A stretch of 64,000 nucleotides of DNA, from positions 124,001 to 188,000 of the forward strand of contig DF236985.1 in assembly GCA_000708835.1 (NCBI GenBank), read 5' to 3'. Below, one piece after another: positions 5,854 through 24,458 of the stretch. This stretch comes from Klebsormidium nitens (lineage: Eukaryota; Plantae; Klebsormidiophyceae). A program made the position numbers and the translations under genes. A model generated the notes under the pieces. It saw nothing but the letters and a program-made list of their open reading frames with translations, was not told the DNA's origin and ran no database searches. Numbering within the stretch: the first letter of the stretch is position 1; each line of letters opens with the position of its first letter.

Positions 5854-6476
5854 CCGTTTTGCGGCACTGGACGGACGACAAGCCATGCCATGATATCCAG
5901 GTTGAGGAAATCCGAAAAGGGCACTGACAACCAGTTTAAACTTAAAGCCGTTGATGTCCTTTTAGCTGTGCCCATCGACGCTAAGTAAACAACGACAAAC
6001 CAGCTCCACAAACCCAGTACAGAGTGAGCCCCTGCTGGGCTATAGTTTGGGGTTTGCACTGAAAACCTGACCCGATGGCCTCCTGTGCAAGTGGCTGGTT
6101 TCGGTCAGCTGAAGAATAGGAAGAAAGGAGATGGCGTGCATTTGCTGCGTCGCCATTGGCTAGGCAGGACAAAGACGAGGACGCTGTCTTTTGTCCACCA
6201 TCGTATAGCATCTTGGCAGGCTTGTTGCAAGTTTTGTAAGTGTATTACAAAATCTCGCTTGTTTTGGTACCCTGGCAGGCATACCTGTTCATAGATTCAA
6301 ATGGTTCCAACTGCTGGGCAACTGAAATGAGGGGGTCTCGTATAAGCCCTTTGCAAGGTTGGAGTGGCTCATCTTGCGCGCGCATGCCAGTCAACTAGTT
6401 CGATGGTGGAAAATCCAGGAAAAGGTGACTTCGCTGCCTAAAGCTTGATTGTGCTGCTTTACGGCGGCCAGCAAGC

Positions 6477-9400
6477 ATGAAACCCTCGTCAGATCAACAG
6501 ACCAGCCAGGTCAATGATGAGATCATGGAGAATGGAAGCTCAGCTGCTCAACTCCAGACCAGCGGTGATGAATTGCAGCTGCTCGACTCAGTGGAGAAAA
6601 AGAAGCCCGGCCTCAACAGCTATGTCCTGGCATGTGCATTGCTTGCATCACTCAGTTCCGCATTGTTGGGATACGGTAAGCGACCCGATCAAACTCTTAG
6701 AGGATGTGCTGCTGCCTTCTTTGCAAACCTCGCTGCATTTGGCTGCTGGAGCTCCAGTTCTCAGATAGCTTCGCATGAATGTCGCAACATTGTCAGAAGA
6801 CGATTGAGCTCTGAAGTGACATATGGATTTAGAGTGGAAGATACTTGACCAAATTTGATGATACTGACCCCTTTTAATGACCTCTCCCTTACTCAAGTCA
6901 GAAAAGTTGGAGAAGACAGTAGCTTCGATCTCACTGATTTATCAACTTCAGGTGCAATTTTCTTTTGGGTGCACTCCCCTTTGACATCCTTGACGCTTCT
7001 CTTTGCTTTACCTGAACCAACCATGGACAACCTGCAGACATTGGGGTCATGAGCGGAGCAGTTCTCTTCGTGGAAGAGGAGATGAAGATCAAGACGTTCC
7101 AGAAGGAGCTGCTGGTCGGCTCCCTCAACCTGGTGTCGCTACTAGGCGGAGCCTTTGCTGGACGTCTCTCCGATTACATTGGGAGAAAAGGTGAGAAAAG
7201 CTCACTGCTGCTTGTACATGCCAAAGTGTCTGGGTTAAGGACTTCTTGTCAGTATCTGTGACAGAACTACTGTAGAGGAGTTCTAAAACCCTGATACCCT
7301 TCTGTGACAAGTCCGCTAAGCCTAGATGACCCTTGTTTGACAGATCTGCTTTGCCTGGTTGAGTCGCCAATCATGTCTCCGAGCAGATTTTCGCTTCAAA
7401 TCAAACTTATCTAGATTAAGCGGATTATCTCCAAGTCAAAGCATACAGCTGCGAAGTGTCCCTTCTGATCTGTATCACAATTATTCAGATCAGCAGAATC
7501 TTTGCAAGTCAAAGCATACAGCTGTGACGGTTGAGATCTCCGTAGCTTGTAGATCGCCGTATTAATCAAAATCAAAACCACACCAAAACTTGGAAAAAGT
7601 GGTGGCCACCAGTGGTGCTTGAAGTTGTCCTGCAGACCTTGAGTTCAGGTGACCAGTTTCCATACTTGCCAGCCCCAGGGACAACGCTGAATTTACTGGA
7701 CCCGTCCATCTGACTTGTGAACCAATTACCATGTTGATTGAAGCTCCACGACCATGGACGGAACCTGTTAACTACCAAAGCGGACAGCTTCCCTGCTCAC
7801 ATTCAGATCAATGAAGTGAACAATAACATCGGTGAAATATGAGCTGACAATGCTGGGACAGTTGGACCTTCTTAGGGTGGGTATGGGAGCCGAGCGCGTG
7901 AATCTTTGGGTTTCTTTAGTCAGTTTGAGGCTTATTCTTCACTGCTCAAGCTTTTTAATCACAGGTCCGAACATTGCCCTGCTCACTCTCGCTTTTGCTT
8001 CCTGCAGGTGGCATGGCCACAGCAGCCGCACTCTTCCTGGTCGGCGCTCTCTCCATGGCAGCCGCTCCGACCTATGGCATACTCCTGGTGGGGCGTCTCA
8101 TCACTGGGTTGGGAGTTGGCGCCGCGCTGCTGATCGCCCCTCTTTACACCGCTGAGCTGGCACCAACGGGGGTGCGAGGCGCTCTCGTGTCTCTTACGGT
8201 AAGTCTAGTCAAATTTGCGAACCCAAGGACCGTTGAAAGGCCTAGGGAAGGGTTGCTCTAGGGAGCTTTTGGTTGGTTTGTATTTAAAGCCCCTAGCGGG
8301 TTATGATACCTTTTAAGGGCAACGAGTATCTCGATTGCATCCAGACTCTGCAAGTTTAAACGTTTCTGCAGCTGCTGAAATATCCGTTTCTTGCAATAAG
8401 AACCGACTCAGGTATATTTTCAGAGATCGAAACAAGTCGTCATTCTGTTTGACAGTGCAATGAAGTCCATCTGTGAGTAGCGGCTTCCAAGTTTCCGCTA
8501 GCGCTTCCCACATCGTGGACACTTGGGCTTAGGTTGTCATTACAGCACTGTAAACATTCACCGCTGTAACGGATTCAAATTGGTCCTTACGACAGTCTCA
8601 GTGCCCTTCCCGAATCCTGTTCGAGCATCAAATCCATTCAAGTACTTTGATTTCAGAAAACTCCAACCGGAACTCTCTCTTCTTCCGTTAACTTCCCGTA
8701 TACCATTAGGCATCCTGACCAGGCACTTTAGCAATTGAGCCTCCCCCTTGAGATCGTCTTAGCACCCGGACAGATCCCCAACTCCCGCCCTTCGCAGGAG
8801 GTCTTCATCAACGTAGGGATCCTGCTCGGCTACATCGCCTCGTACGCGCTCTCCGGCCTCCCCGCCAGCTCGGCCTGGCGCTGGATGGTCGGTCTCGGGG
8901 CAGTCCCCGCATTCTTCCTCGGGGCCGGCGCGCTCTTCATGCCCGAGAGCCCCCGCTGGCTCGTCATGCGCGGGCGGCTGCCGCAGGCGCTCCGGGTGCT
9001 CCTGCTGACGTCATCCGGGGACCGCGACGACGCCGACGCGCGGCTTGCGGAGATTGTGGCGTCGGTGCAGGGGAGGGGGGTGGGGAGTGAAGCGCGGCTG
9101 GCGAGGAAGGAGTCGGGGCAGCAGGAAGAGCAGAGCGCGGCTCCGCTGCGAGCGACGGCGGCGCGGAGTCGACGGGGGTCGGCCGACGAGCGGAACGGCA
9201 AGGGAAGGAAAGGAGCGGAAAGCAACGAGCGGAATGGGAAGGAAGGGAAAGGAGCGGAACTCGAGGGCGAACGAGGGGCGGTGCGCAAGCAACCTGAGCT
9301 CGAGCAGAAGAAAGCGGAGGAGATCGCGCGCCTGCAGCGGGTCGGCGCGCAGCCCGCGTTCTCCGGGAAGGGCAGTCGGGCAACGGAATCCGGCGCCGGA

Positions 9401-10927
9401 AAAAACACCAGAACGCACACGGGGTCGCCTTTTATGGAGCCGCACGAGGGGACGGACGCGCTGGCTCGAGGAGATCTAGACGCAGCGGAGGGGCTGGAGG
9501 AGTTGGTCACAGAGCGGGGCGGCGGAGGGAGTGGTGTGTGGCGGGATCTGATGCTGCACCCTACACCGGTGGTCAAGCGGATGCTGCTCATCGGGCTGGG
9601 GTCCAACTTCTTCCAGCAGGTGAAGTGGCTTCCTGAACTCGCTTTCTCCCATTCTTTTCGTTTGCCGAGCCGATCGGTCGCCAGTCCATGGCTTCCCTTC
9701 TCGAACTTGCTCCATGACCTCGAAAGAAGCGGGCAGCTAACATTTTCAGCGATCCGTGGCAGTCGCAAACCTTGCTGGCCGTTAGGAAAAGGGACTCATC
9801 TGATATCCCTGAGACATGGACAATGTGCAACGTCGACTGCCCTCACCCCTTCGTTCGCCGGGAGTTCGACCGGACCAGCGTGCTCAAAAGCTCGTCACCT
9901 TCAATTCAGCGAAACGTCTAAGCTAACTCGCTACCTTGTTTTCCAGGCGACTGGTGTGGACGCCATTGTATATTACGCTCCAGCCGTCTTCGCCCTCGCC
10001 GGAATCAACACCCGCGCGGGCGTCCTCGCCTCCACCATCGTGGTCGGGGCGGCCAAGGCCGGTTTCGTTTTGGTCGCCGTTTTCCTCTTGGACCGGGGCT
10101 GGGGAAGGCGACCACTCCTCCTCATGAGCGCGGTCGGTTGCACCGTATCCCTCCTAACCCTCGCCATCGGTTTCATGCTCCTCGGGGGCGGCATGAACGA
10201 CACCCATACGGCCCATGCTCCATCCCCCGGTTCCGCCGTTCCGGTCGGGCAGGACGGAACGGGGTTCCTCCGGTCGCTCGCGCCGGTGCTGGCTGTGACT
10301 GCCACGTGTGCGTACATGGCGTTCTTCTCGGCTGGGCTTGGGCCGGTGAACTGGGTTCTGGTTAGCGAGATCTTCCCGTCAAGGCTTCGAGCGCAGGCCA
10401 TGGGGCTCGCGACCGTTGTAAACCGCACGATCAGCGGCACTGTCTCCCTCACTTTCCTCAGCCTCGCGGAAGCAATCACCGCGGCAGGCACGTTTTTGCT
10501 CTTTGCGCTGATCGGGCTCGCATCCGTGGCGTTCTTCTATTACGTGGTGCCGGAGACGCGGGGGAAGAGCTTAGAGGAGATAGAGAAGATGCTCGCGCAG
10601 AAGGACGGCCCAGAAACGGAAGTTGCTAACGCTCCGACGGAAAAGCAATCGTGGTTAAGTAGACTGTACCAAAGGATCACAGGAATGTTTGCTCGAGGGT
10701 ATTCCGAGGTAGGAGATGCGGGACAGGACGATAGCGTGAACGGGACCGATGAAGATCAGACGCCCGTCAAGAAGGATACCGGTGATACCCGCCGCATCAA
10801 TAGGTTAGCAGCAGCTTCGGAGCAGGCAGAGGCTAGGTTAAGCTTGCGGGACAAAGTCAAGGCGATCGCACTGCGTAAAGAAAACGTTGGTCCATCGGAA
10901 TCGAGTAGGATGTTAGATGACCTGTAA
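6477..10927 (+). CDS. MFS sugar porter, polyol/monosaccharide transporter (PMT/PLT family), 5 exons, about 781 aa
   Basis: Exons 6477-6675, 7038-7190, 8008-8198, 8798-9619 and 9947-10927 join in frame (2346 nt). Motifs: LLGYDIGVMSGA, LSDYIGRK, GRLITGLGVG, PLYTAELAP..RG.L, MPESPRWLVMRGR, FFQQATGVDAIVYYAP, DRGWGRRPLLL, GLGPVNWVLVSEIFPSRLRAQA, VPETRGKSLEEIE. Confidence 0.95.
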
Positions 10928-14882: not shown

Positions 14883-15320
14883 GAGGGGGTCGCGGGCCTG
14901 CTTTTGACCGAAGGGGACGAATCCGACTGATTGCAAGTATGCGGAATGGCGAAGGGAGGGAGGAGGACGGACGGAAGCCGATGGAGACGGAACGGNNNNN
15001 NNNNNNNNNNNNNNNNNNNNNNNNNNNNNNNNNNNNNNNNNNNNNNNNNNNNNNNNNNNNNNNNNNNNNNNNNNNNNNNNNNNNNNNNNNNNNNNNNNNN
15101 NNNNNNNNNNNNNNNNNNNNNNNNNNNNNNNNNNNNNNNNNNNNNNNNNNNNNNNNNNNNNNNNNNNNNNNNNNNNNNNNNNNNNNNNNNNNNNNNNNNN
15201 NNNNNNNNCGAGGGGGTCGCGGGCCTGCTTTTGACCGAAGGGACGAATCCGACTGATTGCAAGTATGCGGAATGGACAAGGGAGGGAAGAGGAGCGGTAA
15301 GCCGAATGAGCGGAACGGCA
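14883..15320 (+). repeat. Diverged tandem repeat of about 110 bp spanning an assembly gap (N 14996-15208)
   Basis: gagggggtcgcgggcctgcttttgaccgaaggg(g)acgaatccgactgattgcaagtatgcggaatgg starts at both 14883 and 15210. The downstream halves of the two units differ, so this is not a simple contig-end overlap. Confidence 0.7.
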
Positions 15321-17204
15321 CTGAAGGGAACGGAACGGAACGAGGAGCGGTGCGCAAGCAACAGGAGCTCGAGCAGAGGAAAGCGGAGGAGATCGCGCGC
15401 CTGCAGCGGGTCGGCGCGCAGCCCGCGTTCTCGGGGGAGGGCGTCCGGGGATCGGATTCCGGCGCCGGAAAGACCACCGGAATGCACACGGGGTCGCCTT
15501 TCTTGAAGCCGCACGAGGAGATGGACGAGCTGGCTCGAGGGGAACTAGACGTGGCGGAGGGGCTGGAGGAGCGGGGCGCCGGGGGAAGTGGCGTTTGGCG
15601 GGACCTGATGCTGCACCCCACACCGGTGGTCAAGCGGATGCTGCTCATTGGCTTGGGGTCCAACTTCTTTCAGCAAGTGAGCTGCAAGCTCGGCCGTCTG
15701 TCTTCCTCTCTTCTGGGGGTCAACCTTCGCCGCCGGTTGATTTCTGCGATCTTCATTATTCCTTTGCTATGGAGGAGTTTGGCAAGTAGCGGGAAGCGGA
15801 CTCTCAGCACGTTGTCTTGTCAGCGTGCTGGTTACCATAACGAAGACTCTGATTTTTCTCTGAGATAGCTTTTGCTGACGATGCACACGATGCAAAGTGG
15901 CAGATCCCTTTTTTTTGATCAGGAACAAAGAGCGACTGGGGGTAGCTATGTGAGATACCGGTTTCTTAGAAAGTCAAGGTTCGTTAAAAATAAATGCAAG
16001 TGTCGGGATCTGGTAGTAACTTCGACTAGCGAATAACGACGAGAGCAAGGAGCTACCGGAGAGGAGATAATATGTTCGAAAGACATTTTCCAGAACCTTT
16101 CTTAAGTGAGGAGCGGAGCATTGAGTACGGCTGTCATCTGCAGCCGCACGAGCTTGAACTTCGAGCTTTTCTAACAGACCCGTGACGTTTAAGTACCAAA
16201 AGCAACCTGCAACATTTTTCGCAGGCGACTGGTGTGGACGCGATTGTGTAATACGCTCCCGCCGTCTTCGCCCTCGCCGGAATAAACACCCGCGCGGGCG
16301 TCCTCGCCTCCACCATTGGGGTTGGGGCCGCCAAGGCCGGGTTCGTCTTGGTCGCCGTTTTCCTCTTGGACCGAGGCTGGGGAAGGCGATCACTCCTCCT
16401 CATGAGCGCGGTCGGTTGCACCGTATCCCTCCTAACCCTCGCCATCGGTTTCATGCTCCCGGGGGCGGCATGAACGGCGCCCACACGGCCCATGCTCCGT
16501 CGCCCGGTTCCGCTGTTCCGGTCGGGCAGGACGGAACGGGGTTCCTGCGGTCGCTCGCGCCGGTGCTGGCAGTGACCGCCACGTGTGCGTACATGGCGTT
16601 CTTCTCAACTGGGCTCGGGCCGGTGAATTGGGTTTTGGTTAGCGAGATTTTCCCGTCAAGGCTTCGAGCGCAGGCCATGGGGCTCGCGACCGTTGTGAAC
16701 CGCACGATCAGCGGAACTGTCTCCCTCACGTTCCTCAGCCTTGCGGAAGCAATCACCGCGGCAGGCACGTTTTTGCTCTTTGCGCTGATCGGGCTTGCCT
16801 CAGTGGTGTTCTTCTATTACGTGGTTCCGGAGACGCGGGGAAAGAGCTTAGAGGAGATAGAGAAGATGCTCGCGCACAAGGACGGCCTAGAAGCGGAAGT
16901 CACTGATGCTCCAACGGAATCGGACTCGTGGTCTAGTAGACTGTACCAAAGATTTACAGGAGGGTTTGCTCGAGCATACTCGGAGGTAGGGGATGCGGGC
17001 AAGGACGATAGCGTGAACGGGAACGATGAAGACCAGATGCCGGTCAAGAAAGATACCGGTGATACCCGCCGCATCAATAGGTTAGCAGCAGCTTCAGAGC
17101 AGGCGGAGGCTAGGTTAAGCTTGCGGGACAAAGTCAAGGCGATCGCACTGCGTAAAGAAAACGTTGGTCCTTCGGAATCGAGTAGGATGTTAGATGACCT
17201 GTAA
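15257..17204 (+). pseudogene. 5'-truncated, disrupted second copy of the polyol transporter
   Basis: Paralogous to the 3' part of exon 4 and to exon 5 of 6477-10927. TAT has become TAA at 16249-16251, a 1-nt deletion near 16458 (ctcggggg to ccggggg) shifts the frame, an in-frame TGA lies just upstream of 15257, and exons 1-3 are absent. Confidence 0.88.
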
Positions 17205-17964
17205 GTCTCGTAAATGCACGCCGCGCGCACTGATTTGATTTTGATTGTAGCTGATCAACTAAATTCAGCGAGCTTGCCCCGCCTGATTGCCCATGTTCAG
17301 CATCAATACATGCCGTCTAAGGACCAGCTTTCTGGCCATGTTCGTCAATGATCTTATGGATGCACATGCTCTTGTGAAACGATGCTGAGGTCGCGATGAG
17401 GGAGCACTATCAGCTTAAAGGATGGTGGACTGGCGCACACCTTGAGCAAACATGAATACATGTGCAACGCATCATGCATCATGAGGGACACTCGATCTGT
17501 ACCTAGTCTCGTATCTCATGCATCCGGGAATCCTCAGTTTGGCTGCATCGTATAACTCATGCTCAACCGAGGCGCACGGCATCTACATTATTGACACTTG
17601 CGATGTGCACAGCTGACAGCTTTTGTAGGCTTGTCTGCAAGCGGTCGGACAGCGACAGAGAGCCGGTACCGTATGGTTGAGATACAACGGCTTCTTGCTG
17701 GCCAACATATGTTGCAGCGCGAGCCTTCCATACACCGATTGCATGTGTTATTAGGAACACGGCACCATAGCTACAGGTTTCAATACCCTACGTAGCTGTG
17801 CCTCACGTGCCGGTCAATGCATCATCCGAAGCATCCTCTCGTCCGACAACGGCAGATGGTCTGTTGATCAAGCGATACGCAGCTCCGCAAAAACTCCCGC
17901 AAACATCTCCCCTTTCGTCGAAAACAGGCTAAGCAACAAGTCTCTCAGACCATCTCTCCAACAT

Positions 17965-20900
17965 TTACTGCCCGTACTTGAGCAGGAAGTCGTTGTTGAT
18001 GACCTTGAACGACAGGCGCGAGTGCCCGAGCGCGGCCATGCGCGCGCGCGCCACCTCCTTCTTGGGGCGCACCACGATGCCCTCTCGGAAATTATCAGTG
18101 CCCGGGTACTTTCCCCGGGCCTTCTCCAGGAGCTCCTCCAGGGTGTAGCCGAAGCCCTCCCCCTCCTCGAGGATGCGTACCGTGGGGATGTCGAGCACCC
18201 GGGCGGCCTCTACAAACTCCTGTGTACCATACAACGAATGTTCGCATTTATGTTGACATTTCTTTCAGAAGCAGGCAACGGTAGTTTAGAAGCAGGGCTG
18301 TCACAGCCGGCGCCGCCAGTCAGCTTTTCTGGGCTCCGAAGGAAGACTCGCCTTCCAGATCAAAAGATATTTCAACTTTTAGAGACAAGTAATGTCTGAG
18401 AGGTGCTTGCCGAGCGGTCGACCTGGGACTTCAGTTCGATCTTGTCAGGGACTGCAGTTGGATCTCGTCAGAGTTCTACTTCAGGCAAAAGAAGCGCAGA
18501 GTCTGGAGAATTCACCAGTGTCGAATGCTCACGAAGCTGCAGTGCCTTATACTAGACATCTCGTCGAGAAATCACAGGGAAATCACACTTAAACTAGAAG
18601 AGCTCGTCATATGCTTCTGTCTGTAAGTCATCAATCTCGTCTGTAAGTTATCATTCTCAATTGTTCCAAGCGCCCACTTGACCACTTGCCTCGTAGTCGA
18701 GGTAGCGCCGCTCCTGGATGGACCACACGTTGAACAGCGCGAGCTGCAGCGCTTTCGCGCGACACTTGTTCTTCTGGAGCCCCGGGCCGTGCACCTCTCC
18801 TTGGAGTATCCAGTCCGGGTTGCGCGCGAGCCGCTCGCGCAGATTGTACAGCTCGGCGACCGCCCAGAAGGCAGTCTGGGCCTTGCTCGTCTCGTCCTCC
18901 CGAGCGATGCCCAGGTTGCGCGAGCACACCTGCGCGCGGAGAATCGGAGTTGTCGAAGTGAAATTGTCAGGCTTATGGCCCTTCACCTCTCAGAGCTTAT
19001 AAGTCTGATCGTTCGTCGGATGAAGCGGACTGCTTCTCGTGGCTGAATTCTCGTAAGATCTCACAATCCAAAGAAAGGTTTTTGAGTCCTGTTGCGAGTC
19101 GAAATGGCTCCCGTTCCCCTATGCCAAAGCGCCTTACGGCTCAACGATCTAAGGAGGAAGCCGCCCTGAGCGGTCGTTGATATGACCTGCTTGCGCTAAG
19201 ATGAGGGCTCACAAGTTGTCCACCGGCTAAAAAATCCGGAAACTCGTCGTAAATCTTCCACAGGAAACGATACGTGCATCTTCCCCCACCGCAAACTATC
19301 TTGCACCTTCGACCAGGTATTTATCGTGCATTGCTCGACGAGCCTCAGGTTCTGCTCGTTACTAGAGTAATGACGGTCCAGATCCTGGATAATCCGAGTA
19401 AAGATGGCCACGTCTCGTGAGAGAGACCTCGGGTCGATCGCGAAATAGCAGAGGAAACAATCGGCGAGAAAAGTGTCACGTCACCTTGAGCTCCCCGTCC
19501 CAGAGGCCGAACGGCCCCGAGGCGCCGTCGACCTTTTCGGCGATGTAAAAGGGAAGACCCCGCAGGGCTTCCAGCAGCTCCAGGCTGCTTTGGACACGTG
19601 GCTCGTCCGTTTTGGAGGGGCCGCGGCCGCCGAACACGGAGGAAAAGGCGACGCCGCCACCTGCGGACGCGCGGGGTTTGGGGGTTTGAGGGTTTGCGGT
19701 TTGGAGTCGGGATGTGGGCTGTGGGGTTTGAAATGCGGTGATGCGCTTGAGGCGCTTCGAAGGCCCAGAAGAATAGATCTTGTAAGTGGCCAGTCAAAGA
19801 TAATCTTGCGCTCAAGGGGCTTTTAAAGGGGGAGGAAACGAAGCAGTGACGCTCAAACTGAGTGAATGCGTCAATTGTCCACTGAGCTTGCGAGGGATTT
19901 GTTGCGTCGATAGGAACTGCCGATAGGAACTGTCGATAGGAACTGCCGTCACTGATCCGAGCCTCGAGTTGCAAGATACAGAAAACGTCTGCGGCAACCG
20001 GTATCTGGTTACAGTAACTTATCAAGAGACATTCCTTGGTCACAATCTGCTATCTCTCTCGGAAGAGATAAGTGGTATTCGCAATGTCCAATCTCGAAAC
20101 CGCAGAACAAGAGCCCTTTGCTTTCAGAGCAACAAGGCTATCCTCGAATTTCTGTGCACGAGATAGATCTTTCAATAATATCATCGACAACGCAGCAGAG
20201 AACAGTGTGCTTACGTGGCATTGGGTAATTTCCCGGTTCCTCAAAGATCCGCTTCTCGATGCCCAGCGCGCGCGTCAGGTCCGCGCCCTCCACCCAGTCC
20301 CCCTCCCCGACCGGAAACTTGTCGCTCCGGGGGAGGAAAAGGCCCTGCGAAAGCTCCCCCCGCAGCTTCAGGGTCTTGATCTTGCGCTTCCGCTCGTCGA
20401 CGTTGTGCCACGTGGCCTCCGGCAGGATCGAATCGATCTCGAAGTAGACGCCCACGTCGCCCTCGCGGCTGTCGATAGGAACGACGACGCGCCACCCGCC
20501 GACTTCGGCGATGGCGAGACGGTCAGCGTTGGGGTGCGGGGAAACCTTGCCCAATTTTACGACCTGATTAATGAAACCAAAGAAGAAAGGTTAAGGATCG
20601 TAAACGTGGGGGAGGGTCGAGAGTATCTAGATACACTGCACCTGCTCTGGGGACGGAGGTCAAGGGTGTTCTGCGTTGGGGTGGGGCAAAACTTTGCCCA
20701 CTTTCGCGACCTGGCTAACGTAACCAGAGAAGGTTAGAAAACAAAGCGGAAGCTCAGAGCAACCAGATTTGATGCTTCTGCTGTTGAGGGCGATCGAAAT
20801 GCGTTCGTTCGGGTTAGGCTTTGCACAAATTCGCGAGCTGCTTTATGTATCAAACGTAAGACCCGTTAGGAACAGTGAAAGGTACTAAGAGTCTGACTCA

Positions 20901-22334
20901 GAAGCATAGCACCTGGTTCTGGATACTAGATTTGAGGGCGGCCAGCGTGGGGGAGAGGGAAGAGATCGTGCCCAGCCACACGACGCTGAATTGGCAAGCA
21001 GAAAGTAGCTGGAATGAACCCATTACAGGTGATTTGTGCTGGAACATTGGGAAAAGATGGGAAAAGGTCACGTAGGAAAAGTTACGTCAGATGATCTTCG
21101 TAAACGGACGTAACATGAGAACATACTTTCTGGCGGTGCGCCGTTAGGGTGGGGAATGACTCGCTCAGCTGACCGTACGTAAAGTAGGAGCGACATCGTC
21201 TGGTGAACATAAGGGAGTTGACCTGGCTTCTCTTGGTTTACTCCTCCATCGGTTCCAAAGAACCAGTCAACTTATGAGCAAACAAAGCGGGCTCAGAGTA
21301 GCCGTACAACGTACTTATTTGCGTCGACTGCTCTGATTGAAAAAAGCAAAGAGCAACTTGAAATATTCAGTATTTGGTCATGAGAACTTCCGTGAGGAGA
21401 AGCTGGCGTATATGAGACTCAAGGAGTATATGAAATTCAAGGAGTCACCGCAAACCCCCTTCTGATATTCTGGTAACGTCCAAAACGAGATAGTCGCAGA
21501 ATGGGAACAAAGTCCAACTCTCCAAAGAGTATCAGAATCGGACAGAAACCTGAACGACAGAAAACCTGAACAAAAGCTTTGAGATGTCACGTGGCCATAA
21601 TCTAAATGGAAAATGGCAGACAAGCAGGCTGTTTGAAACGCAGACAGTTTCGAAGTCAAATTGCTGATTACCTTCGCCATCGAGCGAGAGCTCTCATCAA
21701 GATCCAGCTGGTTCAGAGCCGCAAGGTCAGCTGCTTCTCCCATACTTTTGTTCCCTTCGACGATCCTGGAAGCCTCCATCTTGCTCTCGGTTACACTTCC
21801 GTTCTCTTCCGCGGTTTTGTTCAGCTCCTCCACGATCTTTGGAGCTTCCATGTTGCTGTTTATCTTCTCTGCAGCACTTTTGTTCTCCTCACCCAGCTTG
21901 CTTGCGTCCATAGTACTGCTGCTCTTTACCCCAGTTTCCTGCTCTTCAGCGATTGCAACAGGTGCTTTGCTTGCGTCATGAAGATCATGAGTGGAGCTTT
22001 TGTCTTCGTTTGGCGCCATTAGTACAGAGGGGATACTAGTACAGAAGCTGCGGCGTCTTTGTTGCGTTCCAGGTAAATGACGCTGAGCAGCAACGCCGCG
22101 CGCCCTGTACTGCAGCTCTGTGTCGAACAATGTTCGCAGCAAGCTGCAAAACTTCCGGCGTTTTAGCTCAGGGCTTGCACAACCTTGGAACAGTGTGCGC
22201 TGTACTACTAGCAAGCCTGCCTGACGGGAACCGTAACAACCATACAATGCAGCACTGCTGTGCAGCTTCATAAAAGCTGCGCAGCCAGCGACGCTCGGCT
22301 TGCCGAGACATGAGCTGAACTGACCGAAAACCAT
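17965..22334 (-). CDS. ATP-dependent RNA ligase of the Rnl5/DRB0094 type (OB domain + nucleotidyltransferase domain) with an organelle-targeting-like N-terminal extension, 5 exons, 560 aa
   Basis: Exons 21672-22334, 20215-20563, 19485-19660, 18690-18929 and 17965-18219 join in frame (1683 nt). OB domain: RSMAKVVKLGKVSPHPNADRLAIAEVGGWRVVV...GDVGVYFEIDSILPE...IKTLKLRGELSQGLFLP. Then KTDEPRVQ, motif I EKVDG, Ia VCSRN, III LQGEVHGPGLQKN, IIIa LFNV, IV REGIVVR and V SFKVINNDFLLK. Confidence 0.88.
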
Positions 22335-22552
22335 GATGACTAGACACGAGTGGACTCCAAAGTGATGATCCTGTTAAGAGGAGAAGTGACGGATACGTTC
22401 CAAGGCTTGTTGAGTCATGAACAACACAATGTGCCGGTCTGTCCAATGCACTGTCCATTGCAGTAATATGAGCAGCTACGTCAGGGCTACGTCACTGTTC
22501 TCCGCTATGTCACGCTGCAGCGTGTAACCGCTTGAGTAGACTCAGTAGTCCT

Positions 22553-24458
22553 GCATGTAACGCGCCCGGGTGCGCGGCGCGAGCAAAACAGGGCGGCCGC
22601 GGAGAATGTGATGCCGGTATCTCGGGGTTTCGGGGGGTGTCCGCAGCTAGGGCGTCCGATCCATGTAGGTACTAAGCCGCCAAGTATATCATAAGAAATC
22701 TGAGTGGGGATTCAGGGCCTTTTGCCCTGCCTCCCGCGGTCGGATGTCCGAGGGTGCGACATTGCCAAATACGGCCTCCTGATTGGCCCGCTCAACACTC
22801 AATATTCAATCTAGGGTACTTCAGACCTAAAACCTTACTTTAGTGTACGTTGGACCGAAATTTAACACCGCAGTTCCATGGCGTGGCGGCCTAAAATTCA
22901 CTAAGTACCGAAAAGCTGTACGACTGCGAGGACCCGGTGCTGAGCACACCGGTTACGGAGTCCTAGCTGAAGAGGCTGGGTGGAGTAACGCCGGCAGACC
23001 CCGGTTGGTCTTCAAGTAGTGAGTGAGAACAGTTTTCAGGTCGCCGGCTTACCGGTCAAATTTCAAGGCCCTAGTAGTCTGACACATAGTACGCCAATGT
23101 CTGACATACCGTACGCACGTGGTACGGTCTCATCAAGAAAGTTTGACTTGGCGACTTCAGTGTGCGACACGTTGCAAATTTGTCAGGATCACGTACGGCC
23201 GACCGTTCGGTTCAGATTCAAACCTGCGGACCGTAAGACTGACCGGCTCATCGCTTCAGCCCGCCGCAAACAGACAAATTAAATAAAACACCTATTTTAT
23301 CGAACCCGGTACCGGGTCCATATAAAATCGAAGATGACTGTCGCGAAATAAAAGTTAAGCGACGCGGATGACCGGTGTTACCCAGCGGTTAGTACCCACG
23401 CTGGACCTACGGGCAATCAACCTGGTACCGGGTTCCGACCAGCGGTCGGATTCAACTCTGGGCTCCAAACTTCCAAAGTGCTGCGCACATTGGAGTTCTT
23501 ATATATGTCACACATGGTGTATCGAAATCGAGATCGAATAATCATATACACTGACATGTATATATGTAACGCATGTAACGCGTTCGACAAATTGCATCGA
23601 AGCTGTCTCGCGATGGTTCACGACAGGCAAGAACTAGGAATTCGACACGTGTCCACGACATGCCTTTATGGAGTTGAGTCCCGAAAGACTGACGTTCCTG
23701 CCAGGATTCGAACCCTGGACCTCGAGGCTCGAGCCGTCCGACCAAACTCTTTGCCCACTGGGCTAAAAAGAGCGCGTACGTTTTAATGCGGAACCTTCCA
23801 AATATATAAAAAAAGTCTTCNNNNNNNNNNNNNNNNNNNNNNNNNNNNNNNNNNNNNNNNNNNNNNNNNNNNNNNNNNNNNNNNNNNNNNNNNNNNNNNN
23901 NNNNNNNNNNNNNNNNNNNNNNNNNNNNNNNNNNNNNNNNNNNNNNNNNNNNNNNNNNNNNNNNNNNNNNNNNNNNNNNNNNNNNNNNNNNNNNNNNNNN
24001 NNNNNNNNNNNNNNNNNNNNNNNNNNNNNNNNNNNNNNNNNNNNNNNNNNNNNNNNNNNNNNNNNNNNNNNNNNNNNNNNNNNNNNNNNNNNNNNNNNNN
24101 NNNNNNNNNNNNNNNNNNNNNNNNNNNNNNNNNNNNNNNNNNNNNNNNNNNNNNNNNNNNNNNNNNNNNNNNNNNNNNNNNNNNNNNNNNNNNNNNNNNN
24201 NNNNNNNNNNNNNNNNNNNNNNNNNNNNNNNNNNNNNNNNNNNNNNNNGTGTCAAGGAGCTGATCTCTCACTTTTTCGGGACCTCCGACTCCGATCTGAC
24301 GGTCGGAACTTCACCGCCAACAGGAAATCGACGGCAGATTCGGGGTGCGACATTGTGTCCGCACCGGACGGGAGGCAGGGGAAAAGGCCCAGCGCTGGGC
24401 CAACTCAGATTTCTTATTAGTATAGGGATGGCAGGCGGGCGGCCGCGCCCTGTTTTGC
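22553..24458. mobile_element. Composite non-coding repeat element with diverged inverted repeats, spanning an assembly gap (N 23821-24248)
   Basis: Inverted matches: gcaaaacagggcg 22583-22595 with 24446-24458; ataagaaatctgagt 22691-22705 with 24403-24417; gggccttttgccctgcctcccg 22715-22736 with 24369-24390 (one mismatch). No transposase ORF in the visible part. Confidence 0.45.
23694..23773 (-). other. tRNA-derived sequence (degenerate tRNA or SINE head)
   Basis: The minus strand has an A-box-like TAGCCCAGTGG and a perfect B-box GGTTCGAATCC inside a CCAGG...CCTGG T-arm-like stem. The acceptor and anticodon arms do not pair properly, so it is not called a functional tRNA. Confidence 0.55.

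Follow-up and report, generated by a model that had tools for sequence, protein, structure and literature searches.

RNA ligases of the Rnl5 family have been listed in bacteria, phages, an archaeon, fungi, and amoebae, with the plant lineage not among the groups listed (PMC4408790). The two reference enzymes, DraRnl of Deinococcus radiodurans (DRB0094; family model TIGR02306) and NgrRnl of Naegleria gruberi (PDB entry 5COT and others), the latter being the eukaryal prototype of the family, are biochemically well characterized. The gene described here occupies positions 17965-22334 of the minus strand in a 64,000-nucleotide stretch of DNA from the alga Klebsormidium nitens (contig DF236985.1, positions 124,001 to 188,000), referred to below as the window. 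It is a real, expressed, intron-containing nuclear gene of a streptophyte alga, and its domains and motifs identify the product as an Rnl5-family ATP-dependent RNA ligase with an active site that is predicted to be intact. The gene was probably either captured from a virus or sporadically retained from an old ancestor and then domesticated by the host, and it carries a labile N-terminal extension. No plant or algal Rnl5 was reported in the Rnl5 literature searched, and a literature search combining Klebsormidium, RNA ligases, and horizontal gene transfer returned nothing relevant. The locus adds a streptophyte alga to the host groups of a known family, with a lineage-specific extension of the protein.

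The algal protein has the same layout as NgrRnl, an oligonucleotide-binding (OB) domain followed by a nucleotidyltransferase (NTase) domain with no C-terminal domain. It differs from NgrRnl in having an N-terminal extension of ~213 amino acids, four introns, and a loop between motifs IV and V that is 12 residues longer, and the identity of the two proteins is low outside the motifs. DraRnl is covered by the same family model that matches exons 2, 4, and 5 of the algal gene, and the algal enzyme would be expected to share its chemistry, i.e., the sealing of nicks between a 3'-OH RNA end and a 5'-PO4 end. However, DraRnl has neither the extension nor the introns, and its bacterial clade is separate from the algal one in the trees described below. 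The coding region, which runs from 22334 to 17965, consists of five exons that, when joined, give an uninterrupted open reading frame (ORF) of 1683 nucleotides coding for 560 amino acids. Its parts are as follows.

17965..22334, minus strand: whole coding region of the Rnl5 ligase, 560 amino acids; the transcript covers at least 22397 to 17812
22035..22334, minus strand: exon 1, residues 1-100; presequence-like segment, basic and with few acidic residues, net charge +12, transcribed, with RRRSFCTS near its end
21696..22034, minus strand: exon 1, residues 101-213; acidic linker, rich in Lys, Glu, and Ser, in which a degenerate unit of ~21-24 amino acids is repeated three times; the Met106 codon is at 22019-22017
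21672..21695, minus strand: end of exon 1, residues 214-221 (ESSRSMAK); native N terminus of the Rnl5 OB domain, holding Arg217
20564..21671, minus strand: intron 1, 1108 nucleotides, GT-AG, phase 0; joint found in 4 runs
20215..20563, minus strand: exon 2; OB domain (PF21189) with Asp265 and Lys325
19485..19660, minus strand: exon 3; the NTase domain begins here, with Thr355, Asp356, Arg359, and motif I (EKVDG), whose Lys380 is encoded by 19535-19533
18690..18929, minus strand: exon 4; motif III (QGEVHG, Glu441) and motif IIIa (Phe462); the GC-AG intron comes next
17965..18219, minus strand: exon 5, stop codon included; motif IV (REGIVVRP, Glu522) and motif V (SFKVINN, Lys548)

Introns 1 to 3 are of the GT-AG type. 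Intron 4 is of the GC-AG type, and its donor, GCAAGT, is the classic one; its joint has a 3-nucleotide ambiguity, within which GC-AG is the sole canonical placement. The phases of the four introns are 0, 1, 0, and 0. This model, proposed in an earlier sequence-only reading of the same DNA, is fully borne out by transcript contigs from four runs that belong to four studies (X1, X4, X5, and X7) and were aligned to positions 17800-22600 (4801 letters). Such contigs, which are silent on expression level, strand, and exact ends, skip 1108, 554, 555, and 470 nucleotides at the predicted borders with 0 mismatches, and a single contig of 1718 nucleotides, from 22216 to 17812, spans all four joints. 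The 21672/20563 junction, which had been named beforehand as a check of the model, is present in the contigs of all four runs. In the underlying run search, 12 runs hold 8 to 37% of the sampled words, the top values (30 to 37%) being close to the expectation from the exons alone. Two contigs extend to 22397, upstream of the ATG at 22334. Since there is no ATG between 22397 and 22334, where an in-frame TAA is found at 22376-22374 (as read on the minus strand), Met1 at 22334 is the first start codon of the known transcript. Independent evidence that exon 1 belongs to the gene comes from the ligase itself: the last eight codons of exon 1 are part of the ligase fold, and the native N terminus of the enzyme spans intron 1 (SSRSMAK/VVKLG, the slash marking the intron), matching the M..R.LAK.V.LG start of the stand-alone relatives.

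Two observations concern the introns of this gene. Intron 1 contains, ~150 nucleotides upstream of the real acceptor, a decoy of the exon 2 acceptor together with the first 43 nucleotides of that exon (about 60 nucleotides, ~80% identical, at ~20724-20666), whose use would lead to a stop after 16 codons; none of the transcript contigs uses it. Intron 3 holds two unjoined contigs of 226 and 204 nucleotides (19205-19433), which come from two studies (X1 and X7) and could stem from pre-mRNA that is not yet spliced, from an alternative exon, or from a small transcript independent of the gene. The folding z-scores of this fragment, +1.0 and -1.2 for the two strands, give no sign of a structured RNA, and an Rfam scan of 17500-22800 returned nothing at E<=1.

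Family membership, also proposed from the sequence alone, is confirmed by several comparisons. Exon 2 matches PF21189, the PHA02142 OB fold, at 5.9e-17 and TIGR02306 at 1.9e-18, and PF09414 (RNA_ligase) matches exons 4 (1.6e-09) and 5 (9.7e-05). The TIGR02306 scores of exons 2, 4, and 5 are 66.4, 19.6, and 14.2 bits, respectively, for exons scored singly (the cut-off of 151 bits applies to whole proteins). A local family hidden Markov model (HMM), built from 13 non-algal members, matches residues 214-559 of the spliced protein over HMM positions 3-339 of 340 with 406 bits, so that residues 214-560 make up a complete OB + NTase ligase. In the NgrRnl structures, chain residues 13-122, corresponding to NgrRnl residues 12-121, are aligned by exon 2 (E of 4e-13), and the alignments of exons 3 and 4 are weak yet in register over motif I and motifs III and IIIa. 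Structural work on NgrRnl assigned roles in ATP and metal contacts to individual residues (PMC7261155), and all of those that were mapped are conserved in the algal protein, including the adenylylated lysine, which here lies in the EKVDG motif noted in the sequence-only reading. The correspondences, with the NgrRnl residue given first, are as follows.

Arg4: R217 (exon 1)
Asp53: D265
Lys121: K325
Thr145: T355
Asp146: D356
Arg149: R359
Lys170 (adenylylated): K380, in EKVDG
Asp172: D382
Glu227: E441
Phe248: F462
Glu312: E522
Lys326: K548

The stop codon follows 12 residues beyond Lys548, leaving no C-terminal appendage, and the missing appendage is the signature of Rnl5 (PMC4408790). By homology to the characterized enzymes, the algal ligase would adenylylate its own Lys380 and pass the AMP to the 5'-phosphate at a nick; attack by the RNA 3'-OH would then seal the nick in the duplex.

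The closest sequences to the algal gene come from other algal DNA. A phmmer search with exon 2 against 1.84 billion cluster representatives gave 4490 matches, the best of which (73% identity) is an exon-sized ORF on metagenome contigs of the Joint Genome Institute (JGI). These contigs yielded four related algal loci, with ligase modules that are 70 to 76% identical to that of the window. Two of them, L001 and L174, share with the window an upstream paralogue of VIPP1/PspA and are therefore orthologous loci, and the other two (L002 and L003) adjoin a HECT gene. All four keep the ...SSRSMAK end of exon 1 and introns 1 to 3. However, intron 4 is found in the window only, exons 4 and 5 being fused in all the related loci, and L002 has an additional intron within exon 2, which indicates recent intron gain or loss in this gene. 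With introns that vary in position among close algal relatives and are missing from the fern homolog described below, the introns look like later gains, as the term "intron-domesticated" in the sequence-only reading had implied.

Beyond these loci, the closest full-length relatives are 43 to 46% identical to the algal ligase. They represent the candidate giant-virus RNA ligase (NCVOG1088 / GVOG) and fall in the same clade as the algal protein; unlike the latter, they are stand-alone proteins of ~325 to 353 amino acids encoded on AT-rich, intronless contigs. Six such contigs (those of P0152, P0156, P0158, P0165, P0006, and P0163) are dense with intronless genes on both strands, most of them without a Pfam match, and have a GC content of 30 to 37% in the loci checked for composition (L004, L006, and L008). 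The recognizable genes on these contigs are of the eukaryotic type and include those for HMG box, ankyrin, zf-MYND, GIY-YIG, AlkB, DSPc, RFC small subunit, ATG8, SNF2-RING, and TBP-like proteins. Such an AT-rich pattern with a high density of ORFans is what large DNA viruses of eukaryotes typically show, and these contigs are referred to here as giant-virus-like, a description that we infer from context. The nearest relative, P0152, is a record from the Loki's Castle sediment metagenome. Giant viruses have been binned from the Loki's Castle assembly, and both the paper that did so and a 2026 paper list "RNA ligase" as a conserved or core gene of giant viruses. An atlas look-up with P0152 returned only Rnl5 clusters labeled as phage, and a scan of IMG/VR found relatives of no more than 40% identity, which are placed outside the algal clade.

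P0152 and the fern protein, used as queries in word-indexed searches, retrieved hundreds of Rnl5 sequences, among which the named eukaryotes were only the fern Adiantum capillus-veneris and the chytrid Rhizophlyctis rosea. The Adiantum protein GOP47_0006648 (P0160), 405 amino acids long, is encoded by one intronless ORF of 1218 nucleotides in the midst of AT-rich DNA. Together with two fern-like transcripts (P0159 and P0021), it represents streptophyte Rnl5 of the same clade, 41% identical to the algal module. The gene (positions 6001-7218 of locus L173, CM043947.1) has a GC content of 49%, compared with 35 to 45% in its flanks, and the only other ORF of at least 130 amino acids within 6 kb overlaps it on the opposite strand. 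It looks like a lone insertion and not like a part of an intact viral element. The sequence-only reading had placed Rnl5 outside the usual toolkit of land plants. The patchy, noncanonical distribution in plants agrees with that statement, which was too strong as far as absence from land plants is concerned, given the Adiantum homolog.

Phylogenetic analysis, likewise named beforehand as a check, included a quick tree of 94 rows and a careful one of 52 rows (LG+C20+F+G4 with posterior mean site frequencies, PMSF); both are unrooted, and NgrRnl was not among the rows. The three algal sequences group together (100/100). They fall with the ferns and the giant-virus-like contigs, away from bacteria, in a clade of 25 rows composed of the alga, the fern clade, and giant-virus-like or unnamed relatives (SH-aLRT of 98 in the quick tree; 100/99 in the careful one). 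All named bacteria, archaea, and the chytrid, as well as the phage contigs from IMG/VR, are outside this clade. Within it, the ferns and the giant-virus-like sequences group without the alga (95/91), a grouping that is not significant by the approximately unbiased (AU) test.

Direct acquisition from a bacterium or a phage is disfavored by these trees and appears highly improbable. Rnl5 is abundant in bacteria and phages, and a Myxococcales sequence reaches as much as 46% identity to the algal ligase, but every named bacterial sequence and every IMG/VR sequence lies outside the 100/99 clade that holds the algal gene. A direct bacterial origin was rejected as a candidate, the named bacteria being outside the algal clade in both trees. 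Of the horizontal acquisition suggested in the sequence-only reading, a bacterial source thus does not stand, the gene belonging to a eukaryote/giant-virus-like clade; transfer as such is plausible, and a single alga-fern origin is not rejected.

A different explanation dispenses with transfer into the plant lineage: Rnl5 would be an ancient eukaryotic gene, vertically inherited in streptophytes and lost many times, which giant viruses took from their hosts. It fits the position of the fungal and further eukaryote-like sequences, which adjoin the 25-row clade from outside, and the fully host-like composition of the algal gene, and a clade of alga and ferns is compatible with the data (see below). 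On the other hand, Adiantum stands alone among the named plant proteins found, its intronless gene nests with giant-virus-like contigs to the exclusion of the alga, and the alga and the fern have no intron in common. On this evidence, vertical descent seems somewhat unlikely. With no shared introns, an intronless fern gene, and a patchy distribution, we lean toward transfer. A link with giant viruses is likely, and transfer via a giant virus is plausible; the trees fit one old acquisition as well as two independent ones, and old inheritance is possible.

The favored account would start most likely with capture from a large DNA virus that infects eukaryotes, or else with a sporadically retained old eukaryotic or viral gene. 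Domestication would have followed, with the acquisition of a host-like codon composition, the gain of four spliceosomal introns, and settlement at a conserved locus beside the VIPP1/PspA paralogue. The GC content at third codon positions (GC3) of the ligase exons, 0.82 to 0.86, is inside the range of the neighboring host genes (0.61 to 0.93) and far from that of the AT-rich relatives; together with the synteny across species, it indicates that the gene is a long-standing resident of the genome. Several points weigh against this account. No capsid or polymerase hallmark gene is present in the fetched flanks of the relatives, whose viral nature comes from context; a clade of alga plus ferns is not rejected by the AU test (delta lnL of 6.0, p of 0.27); the unrooted tree does not give the direction of transfer, from virus to host or from host to virus; and the searches for named plants were word-indexed and length-filtered, which leaves the absence from other plants unproven. 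The gene extends the range of the family by an expressed, intron-bearing algal copy with kin in ferns and giant-virus-like DNA, and it probably exemplifies the domestication of a viral gene for RNA repair by a host of the plant lineage.

Exon 1 encodes ~213 residues that precede the ligase fold. Residues 1-100 include 11 Arg, 4 Lys, 1 Asp, and 2 Glu, are rich in Ser, Ala, Leu, and Gly, and have a net charge of +12; residues 101-215 have a net charge of -13 and contain the three degenerate repeats, which are seen at the amino acid level and were undetected in the DNA by Tandem Repeats Finder. No Pfam domain scored above the cut-off in exon 1. A query with exon 1 (residues 14-234 of the extended ORF) had no match in a collection of 5.8 billion proteins; therefore, the extension has no detectable relatives of 182 to 579 amino acids there. 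The GC3 of exon 1 is 0.55 (0.54 for residues 1-100) and that of the L002 exon 1 is 0.45, both near background, as opposed to the 0.82 to 0.86 of the ligase exons. Exon 1 evolves fast. In the favored account, this labile extension, a basic segment of ~100 residues followed by an acidic repeat linker, would have been added upstream of the native start of the ligase.

The sequence-only reading had regarded the first ~100 residues as a mitochondrial presequence. The underlying counts are correct: the segment is Arg-rich with only 3 acidic residues, its composition is like that of a transit peptide, and both RRRSFCTS and the internal Met106 (MAPNEDK) are present in the translated ORF. In L002, exon 1 is only 25% identical to that of the window and is likewise first basic and then acidic (+11, then -5), with a start that is more classical and Arg-rich. 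Conservation of composition without conservation of sequence, as seen between these two exons, is the behavior of transit peptides. It may be that the basic segment serves as a transit peptide for an organelle and that translation from Met106 gives a shorter, untargeted form. For organelle targeting of any kind, the case is close to balanced, with the scales tipped somewhat against it.

The specific proposal is that the protein is imported into mitochondria by means of a presequence of ~97 amino acids, cut at RRRSF/CTS, and works there as a ligase for the repair or processing of mitochondrial RNA. The net charge of +12 with 3 acidic residues in the first 100, the RxF motif at residues 95-97, the matching layout of L002, whose Arg-rich start is more classical, and the transcription and in-frame splicing of exon 1 all agree with it. 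However, residues 1-30 are free of Arg and rich in Ser, Ala, and Gly, a composition no less compatible with a chloroplast transit peptide; the maximal hydrophobic moment over 18 residues is 0.43, a value reached by 74% of shuffled sequences; the RxF motif is weak; and a 97-residue presequence followed by a 110-residue acidic linker would be unusual. The syntenic loci provide a further argument. The exon 1 ORF of both L001 and L174 opens at a conserved MA(T/S)AV, only ~60 to 75 residues before the ligase fold, at a position that corresponds to the Met106 region of the window, and the basic segment is not seen there; relaxed tblastn and ORF listing revealed no convincing upstream presequence exon in L001. 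Such a segment is present in L002 and L003. The label "mitochondrial" is not justified by these data, and a specifically mitochondrial destination is distinctly unlikely; the full scheme of mitochondrial import and RNA repair is just as doubtful.

Alternatively, the extension could be a disordered tail that evolves fast and may include basic patches of the nuclear or nucleolar kind, such as KRRK. The ligase would then be a nuclear or cytosolic enzyme that acts on damaged RNA or, as has been suggested for its Deinococcus counterpart, on nicks in DNA whose 3' ends are ribonucleotides. Loss of DraRnl makes Deinococcus radiation-sensitive (PMC5397189). A disordered tail would account for the background-like GC3 of exon 1 (0.45 to 0.56, against 0.82 to 0.86 in the ligase exons), for the lack of database relatives of this exon, and for the short, acidic extension found in L001, L174, and ferns; the fern homologs (P0160, P0159, and P0021) have an acidic N-terminal extension of 57 to 68 amino acids without a basic segment. 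It is less at ease with a basic, acid-poor composition maintained over ~100 residues in two loci at 25% identity, which is typical of transit peptides. This explanation deserves serious attention while falling short of being probable.

Another possibility is that a single captured ligase of the giant-virus type serves two compartments, the form starting at Met1 being organellar (plastid or mitochondrial) and the one starting at Met106 cytosolic or nuclear; relatives may split these roles between the long type, such as L002, and the short type, such as L001 and L174. This arrangement is speculative and rather unlikely. The short and long versions of the N terminus are both found in each of two JGI samples, 3300060284 and 3300060285; L001/L174 and L002/L003 could be paralogues from one alga or could come from two co-occurring species. 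A precedent for a nick-sealing RNA ligase inside an organelle is provided by the kinetoplastid editing ligases REL1 and REL2, which belong to a different ligase family, Rnl2, and have a different domain layout; no REL-type editing system is known from streptophytes. If the tail does direct import, it would provide a concrete cellular site for Rnl5 function. If, in addition, two compartments are served, an Rnl5 would for the first time be assigned to an organelle, and a previously unrecognized activity of organellar nucleic acid repair would be added to the plant lineage.

In the neighborhood of the ligase gene, the window carries tandem copies of a gene for an MFS transporter similar to those for sugars or polyols (8735-10927 and 16182-17204). 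The C-terminal exons of the two copies are nearly identical, and an assembly gap, a run of N at ~14950-15250, lies between them.

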